From: Laetmonice hystrix | Taxonomy: Eukaryota | Length of the DNA: 64,000 nucleotides | Reading direction: 5' to 3' | NCBI GenBank assembly: GCA_965235115.1 | Contig: OZ249440.1 | Location: forward strand, 16,926,001-16,990,000 | Part shown: positions 838 to 34,500 of the stretch, one piece after another | Layout of the letters: each line of letters opens with the position of its first letter | How positions within the stretch are numbered: position 1 is the first letter of the stretch | Position numbers and translations under genes: made by a program | The notes under the pieces: model-generated | Told to the model about the DNA's origin: nothing | Seen by the model: only the letters and a program-made list of their open reading frames with translations | Database searches by the model: none

Positions 838-1017
838 CTTCATCTATATCAGGTGGTAAGCCTCCTACAAAGACCTTGCGTGAGTAGCGCTCGATTCGTT
901 CTATTCCTGACTGTGAGCTAGGCGACCCCCGCGATGGCGAGCTCATGTTGGGCACCGTCTGGTCGCAGCCCTCCTCCTGGTAGTGGCCGTCGTCTGCGTA
1001 CCCGAAAGGCGACTTCC
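838..1017 (-). CDS. CPEB2/3/4: CPEB2/3/4 (Orb2-type) coding exon: end of N-terminal region and start of RRM1 (180 nt, phase 1-1)
   Basis: Translates as (G)KSPFGYADDGHYQEEGCDQTVPNMSSPSRGSPSSQSGIERIERYSRKVFVGGLPPDIDE. ERYSRKVFVGGLPPDIDE is the invariant start of RRM1 in the CPEB2-4/Orb2 subfamily. Flanked by acceptor atgtgttttccag (AG at 1019-1018) and donor GAAG|gtaggt (GT at 837-836). Both boundaries match my recollection of the vertebrate CPEB4 exon GQSSLFPMEDG...DIDE. Confidence 0.97.
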
Positions 1018-7100: not shown

Positions 7101-9183
7101 CTCCTCGATCAATATTTTCTTAACCAAGCACGCAAACTTACAAAATCTCGGTCGATGAAAACTAAGGATAAAAAGGATCAAACTGGAAGTATTTTAAAAT
7201 GATGGCAGGTGTCTTTTGGGCAGAACAAGAGTAATGTCTAATTAATCAAGTGTTACAACATGAATATACAAAAACACAAAACTAAAAATGTAGCTCTATA
7301 CTTTTTACCGGAGGTTAAAATAAAAACAAGTCAGAGACACACAAGCACCCATCCTTTGTTTACAATGCCTACGGGTGAGTAAACCCAACCCTAGAATATT
7401 GAAGATCACTGGCAGTGAAAAGTGCCTAGTATTTCCAAAATTACTGAACCTTAAAATAATCACACTCAACATTCAGAAGGACTTTTTGCCATGAATCCAC
7501 CAGACTCTATCAACCGTGAGACTCCCTTCTAACCGACTTCAAACCCCCCTTTTTAAAGATGTGACAAATTTAACGAGCGCTCTTTTACTCTTGTATTGAG
7601 AATAAATGGGTCCTTTAAAAAAAAAAAAAGTTTATGCGATTGTCATCGCAGCGGCAACCACTCCGAACACGACTGAAATGCGTTTCAAAGTAATGCCACA
7701 TGATTTAGCCATTGTGTGAGGCTCTCGATTCGCCCTGCTGGTAGTGATGCCCAGACAGTGCCCCCCCCCCCCCCCCCCCCCCAGTTTGGCCGCGGAGTCC
7801 ATATATTACACGGAGCTCTACGCATGGTTGATATTTAAAATGTCTCAGCCGTACACCAAACCTCTCGAGCTACCTTGGAACCGTCCCTGATTACTTCTAC
7901 AGTCCGCCACATGCCAACACAATCCACCATCCAATTCACACCTAGATACCAACTTATCGACTGCGACTTTTTTTTCTATCTCGCTCCCTCTCTCTCTCAG
8001 TCAGTTTCCGATGTCGGTTGAGAAATTGCATTGGGGCTGAGATTCAGCAGTGTTGACTAATTGCTGAGGAGATTTTGCTAGCTAGGCCGGCCATGTCTAG
8101 GTTGCTCCGGCATGGTTTCCTTCCTCTCGGCCTTAAGGTAATTGGCTGAATTTAGTGCACAAAAATGGATGGCAAGTGCTGCCTAACAAGCAGTCATCGG
8201 CTGTGTGCTTAGCTGGCCCGTCACGTGACGGATTTGACCTTTTTGCCTTCTGGGGACATGGGTGGTCGGGCCACCGGTATAAGTTAGCTTGGTGAAGGGC
8301 AAGGGTGAATAGAGCCAGGGTAGGAGCAGGCGAAGGGGGAACTAGCCAAGTCCGGGTACCAGTAGTAACAATACGCAAGGGTTAACGACTGTAGACGGTG
8401 TAGTAGGAATCGTTTGAGTCAAGATTCCTTCAGCCTCCAGACTCGGAGCCATCTGCTGGCATTACTGGACACTACGCTACCTCCCACGTCTTGATGTATA
8501 CGAAACATATTGCAAATATTAGCGCCCCCCCCCCCCGCTTTCTTTCTCTTTACTTTTGTTGGTATTAACTGGCATAAGGCTGGTATATATGTATAAAGCC
8601 AGTCTTCTCGATCTTGACTTCCTAACATATAGGGTTTCGGTGCAAATACTGTGCCTCTCATGGAATTCAAATACTACACGACAATACAGCAGGCCAAATA
8701 ATCAAGAAATAAAAACCTATTCTGCTTAAAGGTTACAAAAGTAGGAGAAAAGCATAAAACGGATTCACTGTCTCAGCGAGACTCGTTTCACAAAGACTGA
8801 TTAACAATAGCCGAGTATTTACACAAAGATTTCCTGTCCCAAGCCCACGCTGAGGAAATATGAGGAGTAAGAAATTACAAGTGAAATTCTAGCGGACGAC
8901 CACAATGTGACGGCTTCAAGTGAAGTACACATGGAACAAAAACCAAGCTACCACCAAGAAAACAACGCCACACTTAGGTAGGTAGGTAGTGAGGTAGCTA
9001 GGTATGTAGGTTGAATGTTAGTGTTAGCAAAGGATCAAATATCACGGAAAAATAGTAATCAACCATCACGAAAGCAGCAGCAACAAGGTTTAAGGCTAAA
9101 AACTGGTGCATCACCGATATAGATAACAAAAGACAAAAAGTGACAAAATGTGAATAGATGCTGCATATAACAGTCATAAATAC

Positions 9184-9207
9184 CTCTACGTCTTCCATAC
9201 GTCCGGG
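9184..9207 (-). CDS. CPEB2/3/4: 24-nt CPEB microexon encoding (A)RTYGRRR(G)
   Basis: Minus strand reads gactaatacctctttcttctttaactcacgcag|CCCGGACGTATGGAAGACGTAGAG|gtattt. Branch-point-like CTAAT (A at -28), pyrimidine tract, CAG, 24 nt and GT donor. In phase 1 it reads xCC CGG ACG TAT GGA AGA CGT AGA G = ARTYGRRR-G, identical to the vertebrate CPEB4 microexon peptide, and splices in frame to the 1017-838 exon. Confidence 0.93.
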
Positions 9208-9509
9208 CTGCGTGAGTTAAAGAAGAAAGAGGTATTAGTCAAAGGGTCTGTCGCAGTGTAAAGGGAACAAAAGTCGGGGTTATTATTATCATTATCAAAG
9301 CCCAAAAATCAAGTTTGGTTATTATGAATGATTGTGTATATTATTTGTTTCCTAATGGAGGAGTTCTTCTCTCGGCTGAAAAGAGAAATGGAGAAAGAGG
9401 CTCATCTTTATATAGTGAGCTGAAGAAATTGCGTGTTTGGAATTAGCAGTGGACCGGGGCAGGGTAGGGTTGGCAGATCGAACTGGGTGACCGACCCGCC
9501 GGCTCCCTG

Positions 9510-12500: not shown

Positions 12501-15500
12501 TGTGACGAGAGTTTAACCAGGTATAGACAACCACGGGAGTATGTCTCAGCCCTGACCGAAACTGCTCAGACACATCCGTATTTCCCGCCCTCTTCAAAAC
12601 AACCTCCCCTTTCTGCAATGCCACCAGTGTTGCGTAGTTTTTCCCCACCACCGTATCATATTACCCGGTGTGTTTATGTTTTTTTGATTGGGACACTCCA
12701 TCAATGCTGGCTGCCCGGAACTCATTGGACCCGGGTGTGCAATCAGCGTGGCGTGGTAGTTTAATGAGGAGACCGGCCAAGACGAGGTGTTCCGGCCAGC
12801 AGGACCTCCTGATCAGTTAGTTACTAGTTTCCTGTGGACAGACTCTCTCCTCCCCTTCCTTCGCCCCACTCCTGTAGGCATCCCCCGGAACCAGTGATTG
12901 CCCGCCAAGCCTGTCCGGCCTGTAAATTCCTATCACCATTAGGATTCAGTGGAGGTGTGAGTACAAATCGTAGCTAGCGTAACAGCTCGCCACTTCCAAC
13001 ATGTCCAAAACACCTGAACCACCGCCGACTTGCCCCTGGGCGGGGTTCCAAATTATTCTCACAAGGCTATAACATATATTCACCTTCTGACAATAGCAAC
13101 ATATCCTTTTCCTTATACCATTAATAAGTCCACTCAAGGCATGATACGTCATCTTCTGATGACAGCGAAATGTCCTTTCATTTGTCATCTTTTATATTTC
13201 AACTACCCACTACTGGTTACGCCTCGTAGTTGGCAGTGCCAGGGACCAATATGGGTGAAATACAACGGCGTCCAATATTAAGCAAGAGTTGTATATGACC
13301 AGCTCAACCCCATCAACAATACAGCGAAACTTGACGTGTAGACATTTTCGGAGGTCAAACCACTTTCTGGCAGACTGACCTCTGGAGTCGATGAGAGGCC
13401 ACGCAGTCGGTATTCAGTTTCAGACATCCAATTAGCAAGTTGAATGTTGATGTATCATGCGGGTTGGGATTCAACCGAGCACAAAATGCTCCTAAACCGT
13501 TGTTTTATTGGGACTGTCCGTGGGTGGAGGCAGGTCGGCACGACCATGCTCACCGACCGGTCATCTCTCTAAGTGATTTTCTGTGTGAACTGCTATAAAA
13601 CATCTCAGGACTGACTCCTCAGTCAGACAATGGCATGCAATCGCTGATTGGCTCTGAGCAAGGCGGGGGATTATCCATTTGGGTATTCAACGCTGGGGAT
13701 AAGATGCTCTCTGAACGAACACTCGGGTTTGTGTACGGCGTGGGATTCAGCAGGGAAACCGATTACGTGGCGGCTTCTTTCTCTGCAACAAATCCGACAC
13801 TAAAATGTTTAAGATAACACCACCGGCGCAATATACTCACATCTTCAATGGAAGACTTGCTCGTAAATCAGTTACTTCAAGGATCTAATACATAACTTTA
13901 TATGCTTTTTAGTTCCCTACAATTGATATTCTAGTGTAATGTCCTATGATATTACGCGTAATTAGACCTTTCTTGGGGGAATTCCATTCTGAGGTTCACT
14001 GTATGGTCAGACTCAGACAGTATTGCTCCTCTATAATAAAAGTTTGCCGGAAGCAGTTTATTTTGCCATCCCTTAAGCCTACTAACATGCAAGAAAATCC
14101 TGATCACCAACGTCAGATCGGTTCTTGTTCTCATGTTTTATTCAGGAGGTAAGAGAAGATGTTTACGGCGGAGACTTTTGAGTGTAGCTTACTGTGCCAA
14201 CCTTGTAGCTTTTCTATGGGCGGGCGGGCGGGCTCCCTTGCATGGCTTCAAGCTCGGAATAAGCAATTTCCAATGGCCTCATCTCATGTAAAACCCCACC
14301 CATTTCTTCATCCGCTCGGCATTCACATAGAGCGGAATATCAGCCACTGCCTTTGCTGCACTGAGCGGTAATACAGGGACCTTATCGTGGGAGGGGAGGG
14401 GGGTCCTAGGCTGGTCTCTCCCTTGGTAAGAAGCCGCCAGCTTCGTATTCACACTGGCCTGAGATTGTGCTTGGAATCCGGTGGTGGCCGGCAGAAAAGG
14501 CCCCAGTTGTAAGCCTGTTACCAAGCGGAGCCGGCTGGCTACCTTCAGTGTGGGGTCTGTCCATGCAAGCTGCGGCAGCCCTATCCACCCCCAACCCTCC
14601 CCTTCCATCCCACCCCCGGGTGTCCGGCTTACCAGGTGGTGCACTGGAGGAGCAGGTGGACCCTGTCAGTAAACTAAGTCGGTCCGCCCTGACGGCTCAC
14701 CCCCACTGGAGGAGGGCTAGGCCAAATCTCCGCCCTGTTATACTGCTCCATGTTGGGTCGCCAGGGCCCACAGGACAACCAGGCGATCATAAAATTCCAG
14801 AATACCCATTTTCAGGTTTAACCATTCTCCCCTAGTTCAGTTCTCCACCGACTTCTCCACAGGTGTTAATGACCGCGGCCTCTGGTGATACATCCCCAAT
14901 GTAGCACGAATTCGGCTAACTTCCTCGCATCTGAATATCCTAATCATGAAACGCGAAGCATGGCATCACCCAAGTAGACACGACAGCCATTAAGTGAAAT
15001 CCTTCAACTTGGAGTTAGCCCAGGATTTTGAACTATATGTCAGGGAAGCCCTAGGATAGCGTATTACATGGAGGTGTGCCCGTCCGATGGGACAACCATT
15101 TACACCACCTACAGCCTCATCATACACACTCTATATTCATATACTACTTAGACTGCGACGAAATTTAATACTCAAGCTCACACGAGCTTTAAGCTTCAGA
15201 AGTAAAGTTGGACTCAAGCTTCGCAAAAAAAAACGGGCCCTGTAGCCCCTTGAATTTGCACAGTTAACGCGGCTGCTATAGTGTCGTAGCTAACAGTGAA
15301 TGCCTACTACTGATGTGCTCTCGTTGGTAAATTATGCATGTTTGTATTTCACGTGCTGATGTTGTTGAAGGAGTTTGTGCGCGGGGCCGGCCTGGGTTGA
15401 CAGTTGTATAGCAGAACGAGGCCGGCGGGGGAGTAGGGACTGTACTACAGCGGCACCAAGCTACAAATGATGCTTGACAGATGAACACTTACGAATTAAA

Positions 15501-28770: not shown

Positions 28771-30504
28771 AGGGCCGGGTGAAAAGCTACGGAGATCAGC
28801 AATGATGGCCAAGGTCACAAACTGGGCAAGGAAAACAAAAATACCGGCCACAGCTGCGTCATGTTAACTTTTTTTTGCGGGCAGTGACGTCGAGTTCTGT
28901 ACAATCAATGAGACAATGCATGTCAACGTGGCCGGCCTATCTAAATAGTGGCGTGGAAGCTGTCAGTGTATGCCAAGCTCTCTATATCCACCGTTTGGCT
29001 ACGTCTGCACGGTCCCCAGGCCCTCCACCCAACAACAACCTGACTGCACAAGTTGCCATTAGACCGGCTCCTATTGACATTTTGTCCCGTGGCGCTGATG
29101 CGTGCATGTACACACTGTTAGCTGCTACCTGTACCGTACGCAAAGCACCGATTCAAACATTTGGCATCCATTTGTGTGTAGTAAAAGTTAGGAGCGAGTT
29201 GTGGCAGCCTGACCGGATTGTCCGGGGGAGGGGGTGGCTGGCGTTGGAAGTGATGGCTGGGATGGCTGATGGATCCGGACAGATCACATGAGTGCAGTCG
29301 TCCTCTGACAGACTGGCTATCACTCAGTCAGCTCCGCCCATACACACAACAGACCTAGACCATTGTAAACACAACCTCCACCACACACAGAGTGGGACAG
29401 ACCCTCCTCAACACCCACATCCACACCACCCCTTCCTGGCTAGCGAGCAGGTTAATCTATAACCGCGACTTCTAAAGGACGTAAAAAGATGCCAGTGATG
29501 AGGACGCATCCCAGTGGCTGCCTTCCATTACTTCAGACGGTCAATAGCTGCACTGCCTCTTCTAGACACGCGTCATCCATCTTTGAAAGACACTCATCCA
29601 AAAATAAAACATATTACAGTCCGATGACGGTCCCATGGAGGAGGTGACTCGACAGGGGCATTCTATTCTCTGTCCAACATAAACACCGGCCCACATTATC
29701 CTACACCGCAACTATATCTCTCTGTCAATGATAGCCGTTTTTTGTGCTTCTAGCATTCTACAAGAAGATATATCGAGATGTCGTGCTTACTGCTCACTCT
29801 TTATTTATGACTACCCTGTTTAGATATCCCAATTGTCCTAGCAACATGGAACACGAGCGCTACACAGAGCCGGTAGGTAAAGAAGATCGATTACATCCTC
29901 TCCCACGGTTGAAAGTCCAACGTCCCGATCTAACATTTTGAACGATGGCCCAAAGACACCAGGAGTAACCCGGCCAATGAGTGGTTGCCTCGAGTCCGGC
30001 AGCGCCCCCTCCTGGACTGACGACTTGAGGAAGAGTGGCTGACAGCTATCATTGGGCGCTGACTGTGGTCACTCCTGGCCGTCTGAGGTCACTTCATCAA
30101 GGTTAAAGGTTCCTTGCATGTTCCTCGTTACTCGCACCACTCATACTACCCTCACCATTCCCGCACACTTCCATACGGTGCGAACAAGCAAGGCCTCCAA
30201 ACAACCACCCTCTAGGTCTCTAATAAGAGATTTCTCTATTTTTGAAGGACCATTGTGATAACAGAGCAATGGTGATTATAAAACTGGTGGGCGAGCGTAT
30301 AGAGGGTGTCAAGATGTTGACAGGACGTCAAGGGTGGGTTCTCCTATTAAAGGGTTAACGCTGTCCCTGCCGGCATCACGGCCGGTTGTCCGACAAGTGT
30401 TACCAAGGTTACAAGGACGTTTCTGGCACTCTCCCAACCAGGCCCCTGCCCCATATGGTGTGACCTTGTTTCTGTGAGAGAGGTCAAGCCGGGGCTGAGG
30501 CGGC

Positions 30505-30570
30505 GAGGAGGAGACCGGGCGGCTGACCAGATCAGCAACTCACGCCCGATTAATCTGACCACTGCTCTCT
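30505..30570 (+). mobile_element. Tiny LINE RT-like relic
   Basis: GDRAADQISNSRPINLTTALS resembles KGDxxDPSNYRPISLTSVLS; single motif only. Confidence 0.3.
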
Positions 30571-31538
30571 CTCTTACACGACCCCGACCGTCGCCAGGGA
30601 AACGAAACCACAAGTATTTAATCTATCCTAATGCTACGTTTAACCCTCTCCAACCTCCTCACGGAAACGTGCTTCTCAAAATGCATCTCACGCGAAACAC
30701 TCAACATGACCCGTCCCTCCTCCCGGGCGCACATTCTGCAATGGTAATTTGGCGGTAGCGGTGAACAACTCGTTGAGCACTACTGCCCGTTGGATGCCCT
30801 AGCCGCCCCCGCCGGGGTCTGGCAGTCCTGTACCGACACGGACCCCGGCTCCTGTACTCATCATGTAGACTGACACGTTTCACGCAGAGTCTGTGGCACC
30901 CAAATTGGCCTTGCCTGTTAGTTGAAACGACCACAATGACAACCTTGGGTTCCTTGTTGAATGACTCTATCAACAGACGTGTACAAGTTAATAATACCCA
31001 TCACATAGCGTGTGATACATGAGTTTTCAAGAAATATTGAAGCACCGAAACAAGATATTATTTAAAATCAGTATTTACAGTTCCAGAATCTTCCATATAG
31101 TCAGCCAACGGATTTTCTAAGCACCTATTCACTTCCGTTCCCTGGCTACGCCAGTCAGACCTTAATAAGTAATTCATTTAATATAATCACCAGCATTATT
31201 CTCTGTCAGGAACACTTTATATCTGATTTCCCATGTGCCACGGATCTCCGACTCAGCCTTACCAATACATTCCTCGGCAGTCATTATTATGCCAACTTCT
31301 GATTTTTTATTCTGAACATGGGGAGATATTTTATTCACACATTTATGGAAAGTCTTGTTTGTCAAGCCTGCACCTGTGGCCGAGTTCTGCCTGTGGTTGG
31401 GTGCCCACCTGGCCCGCTGGACAAACACCCATAGTGATGGCACCAGTCAATACTGGCGGCAAGGGACTCAGTCAACTTACATAATACAACGGCCCCAATA
31501 CATGTACCAAGTGACACAGAAAGGGCAGCACAACATAC

Positions 31539-31586
31539 CGTCAGCCTCAATACGCACCAATGGAAACGTTCCCAAACTTTGCTTAC
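31539..31586 (-). CDS. CPEB2/3/4: Probable 48-nt CPEB cassette exon (G)KQSLGTFPLVRIEAD, beginning with a 5'-splice-site sequence
   Basis: Minus strand reads ggctaatttgtgtgtgttttttcttctttccag|GTAAGCAAAG...GAGGCTGACG|gtatgt. Branch point CTAAT (A at about -27), about 25-nt U/C/GU tract, CAG, 48 nt open in phase 1-1, donor ACG|GTATGT. The final G plus CC of the microexon gives GCC (Ala) of ARTYGRRR. Size and position resemble the about 51-nt alternative exon preceding the microexon in vertebrate CPEB2-4, but peptide similarity is weak. Confidence 0.7.
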
Positions 31587-34500
31587 CTGGAAAGAAGAAA
31601 AAACACACACAAATTAGCCAGTGTATCGCAATAATCCATTTCATGACTGACTTTCTGAAACAATGATGAATGAGCTTGACATCTACTGTTGCTATTCCTG
31701 ATTGGAAAGTCTAGAAGGCGATATTGATTCTCCACAACAGCTTGAGTCTTACGTGTTCTTGTTTTAAAAGTCATTAAAAGCTGTGCAGCGCATTAATCTA
31801 AACATCAAACCTGACGGAGTGGATTCAAGTGAGGCCTGCACCGATCATGATCTGACTTCGGTTTAATCAGATTGTGCATGCCGACAGAATTATTTCCATA
31901 AAATGAAAATGTCAGCAAAAGCTGAGATAACTTAATTCTAGCCAAATTATAGATCGACTATTGGTTCTCCCCGGATGCCTTGTCCAATACATCGACAGCC
32001 ATCTCAAATTAATCAATGGATTAAATTCACAGGTTCATTAAATGAAGGTTGAACACAAATCCAACCGTAAATTTGGTTTGTCCTGGGCAAACCGTGAACA
32101 TTCCCCTATCTCTGACATTGTTTTCAGTTTACTGAATCCATAGGTATCGGCTCGACACTGCACAAAATCTTGATAGCAAGCAAAGAATTTAAGGCGGAGG
32201 TGTGGGTGGATTTTCTTTGTCTGGTACTCTGGTGGCTGCATCATTTTTTCCCTGGTACAAGCAATTTACTTTGAAAAGAATATTGACGCCGTATCTAATA
32301 TATCTTTGTGCACAGAACTATTAAGATACTGTGCAATGGTAGCACCCAATCCCACCGTGTCTACAATATGACCGTGCATTCCTTCACGCTCATCCTCAGT
32401 GAGAATAATTAAACTTTCCATAATAATACTAACATTGGACACTCCTTAGATTAAGTCTTTCTGTGCGCCACTAATTTCCCTGTGTGTGGCTCCCGTTGTA
32501 TTCAATGGCCACATGAAGGTCAGGTTGGGACATCATTCTGGCTGGGACATGGGACAACGGTCAGGTCGCCTTATCACCCCTACTCTCTGCAGACCTACAT
32601 ATCTCCATAAGGCCCGCCCGCCCGCTCACTCCCCGCCTCCATCTGTATGCGGCGGGAGGTTATAAACTCGCTATCAATTAGTCCTAAAGTCGGCGCTAAG
32701 CATTATCAGCAGCAGGATCAAGGCATTTGCTTTAGACCTCAGGGCATTTCCCCTACGTGTCTGTCGCCAGTAATCTGACATCATATCCTGGACACCAGAC
32801 CAAATGGCCAGTATCGAGCCATCATCGGACAAAATGGCGGCGGCAGGTCTAATAACGACGGTCACCAACTCTTTGCCGGACGCTTTACGGGCCCGATAAT
32901 ACACTTTAATTGGCTCGCTCCAAATCTACATTTAAATGCACGCACAAAATGTCACCCCCTGCATCACTCCACAACAGACGTGCTGGCCGTCAAATCTAGA
33001 ACTGTAAACGTCTCGGGAGACTACCATTCCTGTTCAATAAAATCATGCCGTTATTCAGTGTGGCTTCTAGTCTATCGTATTAATTGGATTTACTGCTATC
33101 CTATATGGGTTAATGTATTTCCATGAGCATTTAACATGACAAAAAGGCATTGGTCTTTGGTCCAATCGCCAGTTGCTTCTTTTTTCGGCTTATGTTAAAC
33201 GCCACCCTAAAGGCATTGACCTGACTTTGCCCCTGGAGTAGAATCTTTGTGTCTGCATAGACTACCTTCTTTGGCATACTTTGATCTCCTAATGGCCTCA
33301 TAATGTCGAACCATGTGACACAAACCAGACTTAATGTGGTAAAAGGCCGTTAGCCTACTGGCGACGGCGGCCGACACGGTTGAGGCAGAGTCCTGGGTGG
33401 CAGGCATTGCCTCTTCTATTTCCGTCTTCATTTCCGGAAGGCGTCTCAATGTCTGGTTTGGCCTGCTACCATGGGCCATTTCCTTATACTTCTTATGTTA
33501 AATATCTGGTATGGATGGTGGGCCTTGAGTTTGTTCACTGTCGGCTGATACTGCCTTACCGCGCCAAATATTAATTTCCGAAAGACATACTAATGGCAGT
33601 TTTCATTATGAACTCTTTTGAGCATCTATTCATAGAGATTTTAAAATAATATAATCTTCTTTAGAACACAATCACTCTGGTGTCCACCAATGTGTGTCAG
33701 GCTCATAGCACCTCTTCTATGTGATATTTCGAAATCGAAGTCGGATGATCGCCTTCGAAAGGCAGGAAAGAGGAGGACCTGCCATACCGCGTGAGGCATT
33801 CCTTTAACTGTATCTTCACGTCAGACCTTTGTAACAAATGGACACGACTGGGGCTTGTTCTATCATTATGGTGATACACGAGTATCTTCATCACATGTCA
33901 GCACAGCAGGCCCATTACGTTTAGAAAACCTGCAAGTAATGCGATATGTACTGTACATAAAGATGTGTCTGACAGATGCTTTTCAGAAAGTACCAACGTG
34001 ACACTACTTTTAGAATGAGTCTCAAGGATTAAAAAAAATGAAAAGAAAGAAAATCATGACACCATCAGTACCTCAAGTTCCTGCCATTTAATCAAGTTGG
34101 CAGCCTTGAAGAATGTCGTCTTCGAACATCAGTTGACAATATCACAATATACTGCCTATCAATTTCATTGTCTGTTCTGAATAAGCTGAAGCAAAAAATG
34201 AGACAAATATTTGAAATCCCGATATTTCCTGCAGACGTGTCCCAACATATACCCTACCTCGAGAGAACTGTGACTGTGCCAAAGCACGTAACACGACCAG
34301 GTGAAGAGGTAACACGCAGCGGGGACGACAATAAATGAATAATACAATGGGACGCAGAGAGCCCTGTACATGGCTGCCGGCCTCTCTTCTTTGAAATATG
34401 TATGTCAGCGTCCCTGCATGCCGCCAGCCCCATACATACTGCTGGCCGGGCGCGTTATCGACAACGGCCATGATAAACCTAAATTAACCCAGTAACCTTT

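Follow-up and report, generated by a model that had tools for sequence, protein, structure and literature searches.

Does a 48-nucleotide (nt) segment that begins with a splice donor of its own, and lies deep in a giant intron of a CPEB gene, serve as a recursive-splice (RS) exon, to be kept in the transcript or spliced out again at the donor that its joining regenerates? The question is raised by a 64,000-nt stretch of Laetmonice hystrix DNA (here called the window; C5:16926001-16990000 in the 627-Mb assembly), in which the CPEB gene lies on the minus strand. For insects and vertebrates recursive splicing is on record. That the 48-nt segment is a genuine splice unit of the recursive type is favoured by another such unit in its intron, by a counterpart at the matching place in a relative and by a signature across the genome; the 48-nt unit is probably a functional RS exon, one of two in this intron.

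Anatomy and genomic setting of the 48-nt unit

On the minus strand, an acceptor and a donor are directly juxtaposed at 31620-31581 in the form ctaat...ttttttcttctttccag/GTAAGC, where the slash marks the splice junction (in full, tggCTAATttgtgtgtgttttttcttctttccag/GTAAGC). The acceptor carries 17 pyrimidines among the 20 positions from -23 to -4 and outranks in strength the listed acceptors of the CPEB coding exons; of the five AGGTRAG sites on this strand of the window, it is the only one with pyrimidine-rich sequence upstream. Donors of the kind that define an RS exon, within roughly 100 nt downstream, are present twice, 48 nt (GTATGT) and 106 nt (GTAAGT) from the acceptor, and the reading frame stays open as far as the latter (TAT/GTAAGT). 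The GTATGT type is also the inferred donor of CPEB exon 8. Every anatomical detail given by an earlier, sequence-only reading of the window (CTAAT, long pyrimidine tract, CAG/GTAAGC, donors 48 and 106 nt on, in frame) proved correct on rereading. A repeat origin of the unit was considered and rejected, since the region 31380-31720 is single copy in the genome; DNA contigs from another data set have identical letters at the unit.

The gene extends well beyond the window on both sides, and window coordinates above 64,000 in this text continue the numbering to cover the upstream CPEB exons and units. The exons for the RRM and ZZ domains were placed downstream of the window with Pfam models, and exons 1 and 2 were located 54-59 kb past its upstream end with an octopus homologue (P0007, reached via the last CPEB exon) as the probe. 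The coding part of the gene spans about 174 kb. The end of exon 2, at C5:17044179 (window coordinate 118179), reads ...CAGCTTAAAG/gtaagtga, the last letters of the exon being CTTAAAG and its own donor AAAG/gtaagt. Between exon 2 and exon 5 (1017) there are 117,161 nt; the 48-nt unit starts 86,592 nt below exon 2, the acceptor of a 24-nt microexon follows 22,331 nt below the unit, and exon 5 lies a further 8,166 nt on, or 30,521 nt from the unit (Table 1).

Because exon 2 ends in CTTAAAG, joining it to the unit would regenerate AAAG/GTAAGC, a donor that departs from the one native to exon 2 at position +6 alone. The sequence-only reading had presupposed an upstream exon ending in G, and exon 2 supplies it; the microexon (9207-9184) and the next exon (1017-838) also lie where that reading had put them.

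Table 1. Positions and predicted donor strengths of splicing features in the CPEB gene (window coordinates unless marked C5).
Feature	Coordinates	Strand	Predicted U1 duplex energy (kcal/mol)	Basis or remark
Acceptor of the 48-nt unit: CTAAT branch motif 31617-31613, pyrimidine tract, CAG 31589-31587	31587..31620	minus		Sequence read
GTAAGC at the start of the unit	31581..31586	minus		Joined to exon 2, would give AAAG/GTAAGC
48-nt RS-type exon, phase 1-1, open, encoding GKQSLGTFPLVRIEAD	31539..31586	minus		Sequence read and translation
Own donor of the 48-nt unit, GACG/GTATGT, GT at 31538-31537	31533..31538	minus	-5.5	Sequence read
Second donor, TAT/GTAAGT, GT at 31480-31479	31475..31480	minus	-5.4	106 nt past the acceptor; frameshifting if used
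24-nt microexon, ARTYGRRR	9184..9207	minus		Next acceptor after the 48-nt unit, same phase
Constitutive exon (exon 5), GKSPFGY...RKVFVGGLPPDIDE	838..1017	minus		Same phase; runs into the start of the first RNA-binding domain
Second RS-type unit, 57 nt, in frame, open (GKQTSCNLFDVYRTISGLS)	C5:17012090-17012034 (86090-86034)	minus		Whole-gene sense-strand scan
Own donor of the second unit, CTG/GTGAGT			-10.3	
Own donor of exon 2			-11.4	
Regenerated donor, all three units			-9.5	
Own donor of the relative's unit			-11.0	

A second unit and a matching unit in a relative

The same intron holds a second unit, outside the window, which reads ...tgtatgtttcag/GTAAGCAG and whose acceptor ends in ...tgtttcag. 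From exon 2 to this unit the distance is 32,088 nt, and from there to the 48-nt unit 54.4 kb; together the two units would split the interval between exons 2 and 5 into pieces of 32.1, 54.4 and 22.3 (+8.2) kb.

For comparison, 66 kb were read from a relative (ENA ERZ25767047, ctg39006), which was reached through a search with exon 5 that returned open reading frame calls on unannotated contigs. Exon 5 is 95% identical to that of the relative at the protein level. Across the introns alignment fails except at one short element; beside this, only exon 5 and the microexon can be aligned, the latter together with its weak GTATTT donor (window 9177-9214) at 87% identity over 38 nt. The sole strong YAG/GTRAG site of the relative stands 34.9 kb above its microexon, compared with 22.3 kb in L. 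hystrix, and intervals in the relative scale roughly with its microexon-exon 5 intron, which is 1.37-fold larger. At this site an acceptor (ctaac...cttctttctttcag/GTAAGCA) opens a unit, ctaacgtgttgccttctttctttcag/GTAAGCA, of 45 nt, in frame and open (GKHHVHLPSQQQYFP), followed by CAG/GTAGGA. When the two species are aligned from the junction outwards, the pyrimidine tract, the CAG and GTAAGCA agree, and the remainder, including the body, is at background identity. From position and the shared motif, without an alignment, we infer that the relative's unit is orthologous to the 48-nt unit. The sequence-only reading had proposed that conservation of AG/GTAAG be sought in relatives; the motif is present in the one relative read, with orthology that is positional.

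Several further observations concern the relatives and the variability of the locus. In a closer relative (P0347) the intron flank is nearly identical. The one intronic stretch that aligns with the more distant relative (8114-8190, minus strand; 75% over 77 nt) lies about 1 kb below the microexon, and its core of 19 identical bases (CTAAATTCAGCCAATTACC, window about 8137-8155) might serve in the control of splicing or transcription. The relative's assembly contains two copies of the CPEB intron (ctg39035 and ctg39006), 93% identical over 20 kb and of equal depth, which are probably haplotigs of a very heterozygous animal. Identity of these two copies across the unit and some 50-60 nt of flank was considered as a sign of constraint and set aside as not significant, equally long identical runs being found elsewhere. 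In L. hystrix, DNA contigs of another data set differ from window 28777-34500 at about 50 places in 5.7 kb, including several small insertions or deletions and a 35-base deletion at 33710-33744, which indicates high heterozygosity; none of the single-nucleotide differences among those listed falls in 31398-31941, and nothing is concluded from this.

Departure from chance

The GTAAGCA start is common to the 48-nt unit, the second unit and the relative's unit, with C at +6 in all three. On both strands of 184 kb here and 66 kb in the relative, YAG/GTRAG followed by a donor 24-105 nt on occurs only at these three units. As a null model, first-order Markov sequences that matched the interval in length and composition were scanned for YAG/GTRAG with at least 14 pyrimidines in 20, a donor at a distance of 24-105 nt and a body that is in frame and free of stops. 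This null yields 0.03 units per 117 kb, against 2 observed (Poisson P about 4e-4); under the same null about 0 are expected and 1 is observed in the relative. All three units are in frame and open. The joint chance that three of three preserve the frame and lack a stop is about 0.3% (an estimate, (1/3)^3 x about 0.09, consistent with simulation), which points towards selection on the outcome of inclusion.

A genome-wide signature

The strict motif Y8NCAG/GTAAGT occurs at 67 sites in the genome, compared with 26 for a backward control (2.6-fold). Among the sites outside a tandem array, a consensus-like donor follows 24-105 nt downstream in 25 of 52 (48%), mostly at 36-64 nt, against a background of 15.9% at random positions (binomial P = 6e-8). 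Many of the 52 have CTAAT or CTAAC branch motifs, and their bodies mostly carry stops. This suggests that the 52 sites, counted without reference to gene positions, resemble ratchet points with cryptic RS exons of about 50 nt. The array, at C12:26313684-26316377, holds the other 15 sites, as copies of C/T-rich ...CCCCCAGGTAAGT on one strand, a repeated acceptor-donor-like motif.

Donor competition and the proposed course of splicing

Duplex energies with U1 were predicted for each donor (Table 1), the sequence of the U1 5' end having been entered by hand. The regenerated donor falls inside the range of the real donors of the CPEB gene (-6.6 to -12.3 kcal/mol). It beats the GTATGT donor of the 48-nt unit (-9.5 versus -5.5 kcal/mol), so that skipping is the predicted default for this unit, and under the donor-competition rule (PMC8605326) the model predicts that it is mostly re-spliced out. 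The own donors of the second unit and of the relative's unit are stronger, which limits the rule that the regenerated donor wins to the 48-nt unit and makes inclusion of the other two plausible on these predicted energies.

We infer the RNA-level course from these features as follows. The strong acceptor and the modest GTATGT donor would together define the unit as an exon. Exon 2 would then be spliced to it, with removal of the first 86.6 kb, perhaps in two steps via the 57-nt sister unit at 86090, and the resulting junction, CTTAAAG/GTAAGC, would be a near-consensus donor. Use of this regenerated donor, the predicted default, would make the unit leave with the remaining 22.3 or 30.5 kb. Use of the unit's own donor would alternatively insert 16 residues in frame between ...DQLK and ARTYGRRR or GKSPF, in what would be the disordered linker ahead of the RNA-binding domains. 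The three-way switch envisaged by the sequence-only reading would comprise, besides these two outcomes, a putative NMD isoform, with the exon junction complex as a possible regulator.

The same slot in other CPEB genes

The 48-nt unit occupies a slot between the exon ending in ...K and the ARxYGRRR microexon, with phase 1-1 and an open frame, and short in-frame lineage-specific exons are found in this slot in vertebrates, chelicerates, Ptychodera and the nemerteans Lineus and Tubulanus. The microexon itself appears in annotated isoforms of octopus, Lingula, a chiton and vertebrates, and its versions include ARTYGRRQ in the chiton, ARAYGRRR in octopus, ARPYGRRR in Lingula and NRGYGKRQ or GRGYGKRQ in nemerteans. 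The peptide GKQSLGTFPLVRIEAD has no significant match among all the CPEB proteins fetched (best short-BLAST E-values about 2), shares with the vertebrate, chelicerate and nemertean alternative exons only a Gly and a basic residue at the start, and was found in no protein in two full-length CPEB searches. Of the full-length transcripts found, the nearest (Logan protein P0157) has GKSPF directly after ...DQFK.

The CPEB gene of Tubulanus covers 39.6 kb and its two cassette exons start with CCTGG and TGCAC; that of the chiton covers 11.6 kb, with an exon 2-microexon intron of about 0.7 kb. The exon 2-microexon interval contains no YAG/GTRAG in either species. Since these genes, with their shorter introns, are without such a site, the donor-first build is confined to the giant-intron species among those compared. 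The annotated SKHHTQPVN isoform of Tubulanus arises through a further donor, 27 nt past that of exon 2. A likeness of the relative's GKHH... to this peptide was rejected as evidence of expression, the Tubulanus residues being a read-through past the exon 2 donor A/GTAAGCATCA and not a cassette exon. In Tubulanus polymorphus that donor coincides with the ten bases that open the relative's unit (GTAAGCATCA), including a shared GCATCA.

The N-terminal CPEB exon of L. hystrix is about 54% identical to exons of a chiton, two nemerteans and one transcript, and no CPEB protein or transcript of the species itself was among the matches in the protein searches. A second CPEB-family gene, with RRM_7 and CEBP_ZZ matches, lies on another chromosome (C2:12394600-12396580) and is probably a CPEB1/Orb-type paralogue.

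Weighing the explanations

A number of points weigh against a functional RS exon. A run search with 5.9 kb around the unit, and with the last exon and 1.5 kb of its 3' flank, returned only three DNA-like runs of one sample and no RNA match; the three are continuous DNA contigs with no joints and no differences at the unit. The own donors of the relative's unit and of the second unit pair better with U1 than the regenerated donor does (Table 1). Conservation of the motif is drawn from a single relative, with orthology taken from position and motif and not from alignment, and the 52 genome-wide sites, being counted without reference to gene positions, may include some that are antisense or lie outside introns. 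GTAAG also encodes Gly-Lys (G/GT AAG), and coding could therefore maintain part of the motif, and whereas typical cryptic RS exons of Drosophila are out of frame (PMC8605326), all three units here are in frame. The main rival is an ordinary alternative cassette exon, the lineage-specific counterpart of 'exon 3' of vertebrate CPEB2-4, in which GTAAGC is a by-product of the split Gly and the Lys and no re-splicing ever occurs. Its position and phase are those of the vertebrate alternative exon (in mouse Cpeb4, the primers given in bioRxiv 10.1101/2023.03.19.532587 show ...ATTAAAG at the end of exon 2 and GTCGTC at the start of exon 3), many bilaterians have short in-frame lineage-specific exons here, all three units keep the frame and are free of stops, as is expected of coding exons, and in two of the three the own donor equals or exceeds the regenerated one. 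It counts against this rival that the body is unconserved next to an exon 95% identical, while GTAAGCA is kept including its synonymous T and G; that the nemertean and mouse alternative exons have no donor-like start; that such a start is seen only with a giant intron; and that the same build recurs across the genome, mostly with stop-filled bodies. An ordinary cassette exon is on this evidence doubtful.

Whether the 16 residues ever reach the mature mRNA is the sole difference between the functional RS exon, as favoured here, and a purely cryptic ratchet point, which would serve stepwise intron removal only, its open frame being due to chance or a safeguard against leaky inclusion. The latter is a sub-case of the former, and the degrees of confidence given to the readings overlap. 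Retention in the mRNA is opposed by the freely evolving body, by the weakness of the 48-nt unit's own donor relative to the regenerated one and by P0157, in which exon 2 is joined straight to exon 5, and the genome-wide set likewise resembles cryptic RS exons of about 50 nt. Against an exclusively cryptic role, and for inclusion or selection on its outcome, stands the finding that all three units are multiples of three and free of stops in the required phase (about 0.3% by chance); we consider such a role possible, while leaning against it. That the unit is a pseudo-exon, a chance juxtaposition of splice-like motifs that is never used, is quite unlikely. Decoy motifs are plentiful in long introns, a single weaker look-alike (GAG instead of YAG) stands at 14149 on the other strand of the window, the plus strand, and the run search gave no sign of expression, but the count of 2 units where 0.03 are expected, the unit at the matching place in the relative and the lack of any other YAG/GTRAG with a nearby donor on both strands of 250 kb speak against it.

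Relation to known systems

The closest precedent is provided by the microexons mI and mII of Drosophila Ultrabithorax (Ubx). PMC8605326 (after Hatton et al., 1998) describes these 51-nt exons as short, in frame and situated in an intron of about 73 kb, where they are kept, or re-spliced at a regenerated donor. The CPEB units resemble them in being short, in frame (48 and 57 nt) and donor-first, in number (two per intron) and in lying in a giant intron (117 kb); moreover, Ubx protein isoforms differ in a linker, and the 48-nt unit would insert into the linker of CPEB. They differ in gene and phylum, and in that re-splicing and inclusion are demonstrated for Ubx and predicted for CPEB. With the ratchet points of Drosophila (Burnette, 2005; Duff, 2015; Joseph, 2018, 2021; PMC8605326) the units share the (Y)nNCAG/GTAAG motif in long introns and a donor about 50 nt on. 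In Drosophila, conservation covers the acceptor-donor motif and spares the body, and the regenerated donor is usually stronger (PMC8605326); the former pattern is seen in the one relative read, with positional orthology, the latter is predicted for the 48-nt unit, and a genome-wide population is suggested here too. The cryptic RS exons of Drosophila are, in contrast, generally out of frame or interrupted by stops, whereas the CPEB units preserve the frame and are open, and position +6 is T in the Drosophila motif and C in the three CPEB units.

RS exons of vertebrates (Sibley, 2015; Blazquez, 2018, PMC6224609) provide the two-step model of exon definition followed by donor competition on part-spliced RNA, but most of them are annotated exons whose retention depends on the exon junction complex. 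Repression of RS exons by this complex was seen in human cells and mouse brain, and not in Drosophila S2 cells (PMC6224609). Within the CPEB family, exon 3 of vertebrate CPEB4 (51 nt; Parras, 2018; bioRxiv 10.1101/2023.03.19.532587), which lies beside the neuronal microexon 4, is like the 48-nt unit in slot, phase, approximate size and a first Gly from a split G/GT; it differs in having no significant peptide similarity and, in mouse, a start that is not donor-like. The 48-nt unit is therefore at most a putative homologue of CPEB4 exon 3, and that exon lacks the recursive feature.

It follows that the sequence-only reading went too far in taking the unit for the best candidate for an undescribed system, since a short, in-frame, donor-first exon that is kept or re-spliced is what Ubx mI and mII and the RS-exon model already describe (Sibley, 2015; Joseph, 2018, 2021; Blazquez, 2018; PMC8605326, PMC6224609). 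The architecture and its logic are known; the gene is new, and the clade probably so. A literature search returned no report tying recursive splicing to spiralians or treating it in molluscs, and none connecting it with CPEB, one review mentioning both separately.

Implications

Taken further, recursive splicing via cryptic exons of about 50 nt may be the general way in which giant introns are handled in this spiralian-like animal, the two in CPEB having become frame-preserving, so that the same two steps would decide whether 16 or 19 residues are inserted by the neuronal microexon; this is put forward tentatively, as a possibility worth holding in view. The genome-wide signature constitutes a ready list of candidate sites. 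If the units are used, they would extend recursive splicing to another animal clade and would be a second case, like that of Ubx, in which recursion is coupled to the choice of protein isoform, at the very spot where exons 3 and 4 of CPEB4 matter for neuronal function in vertebrates.

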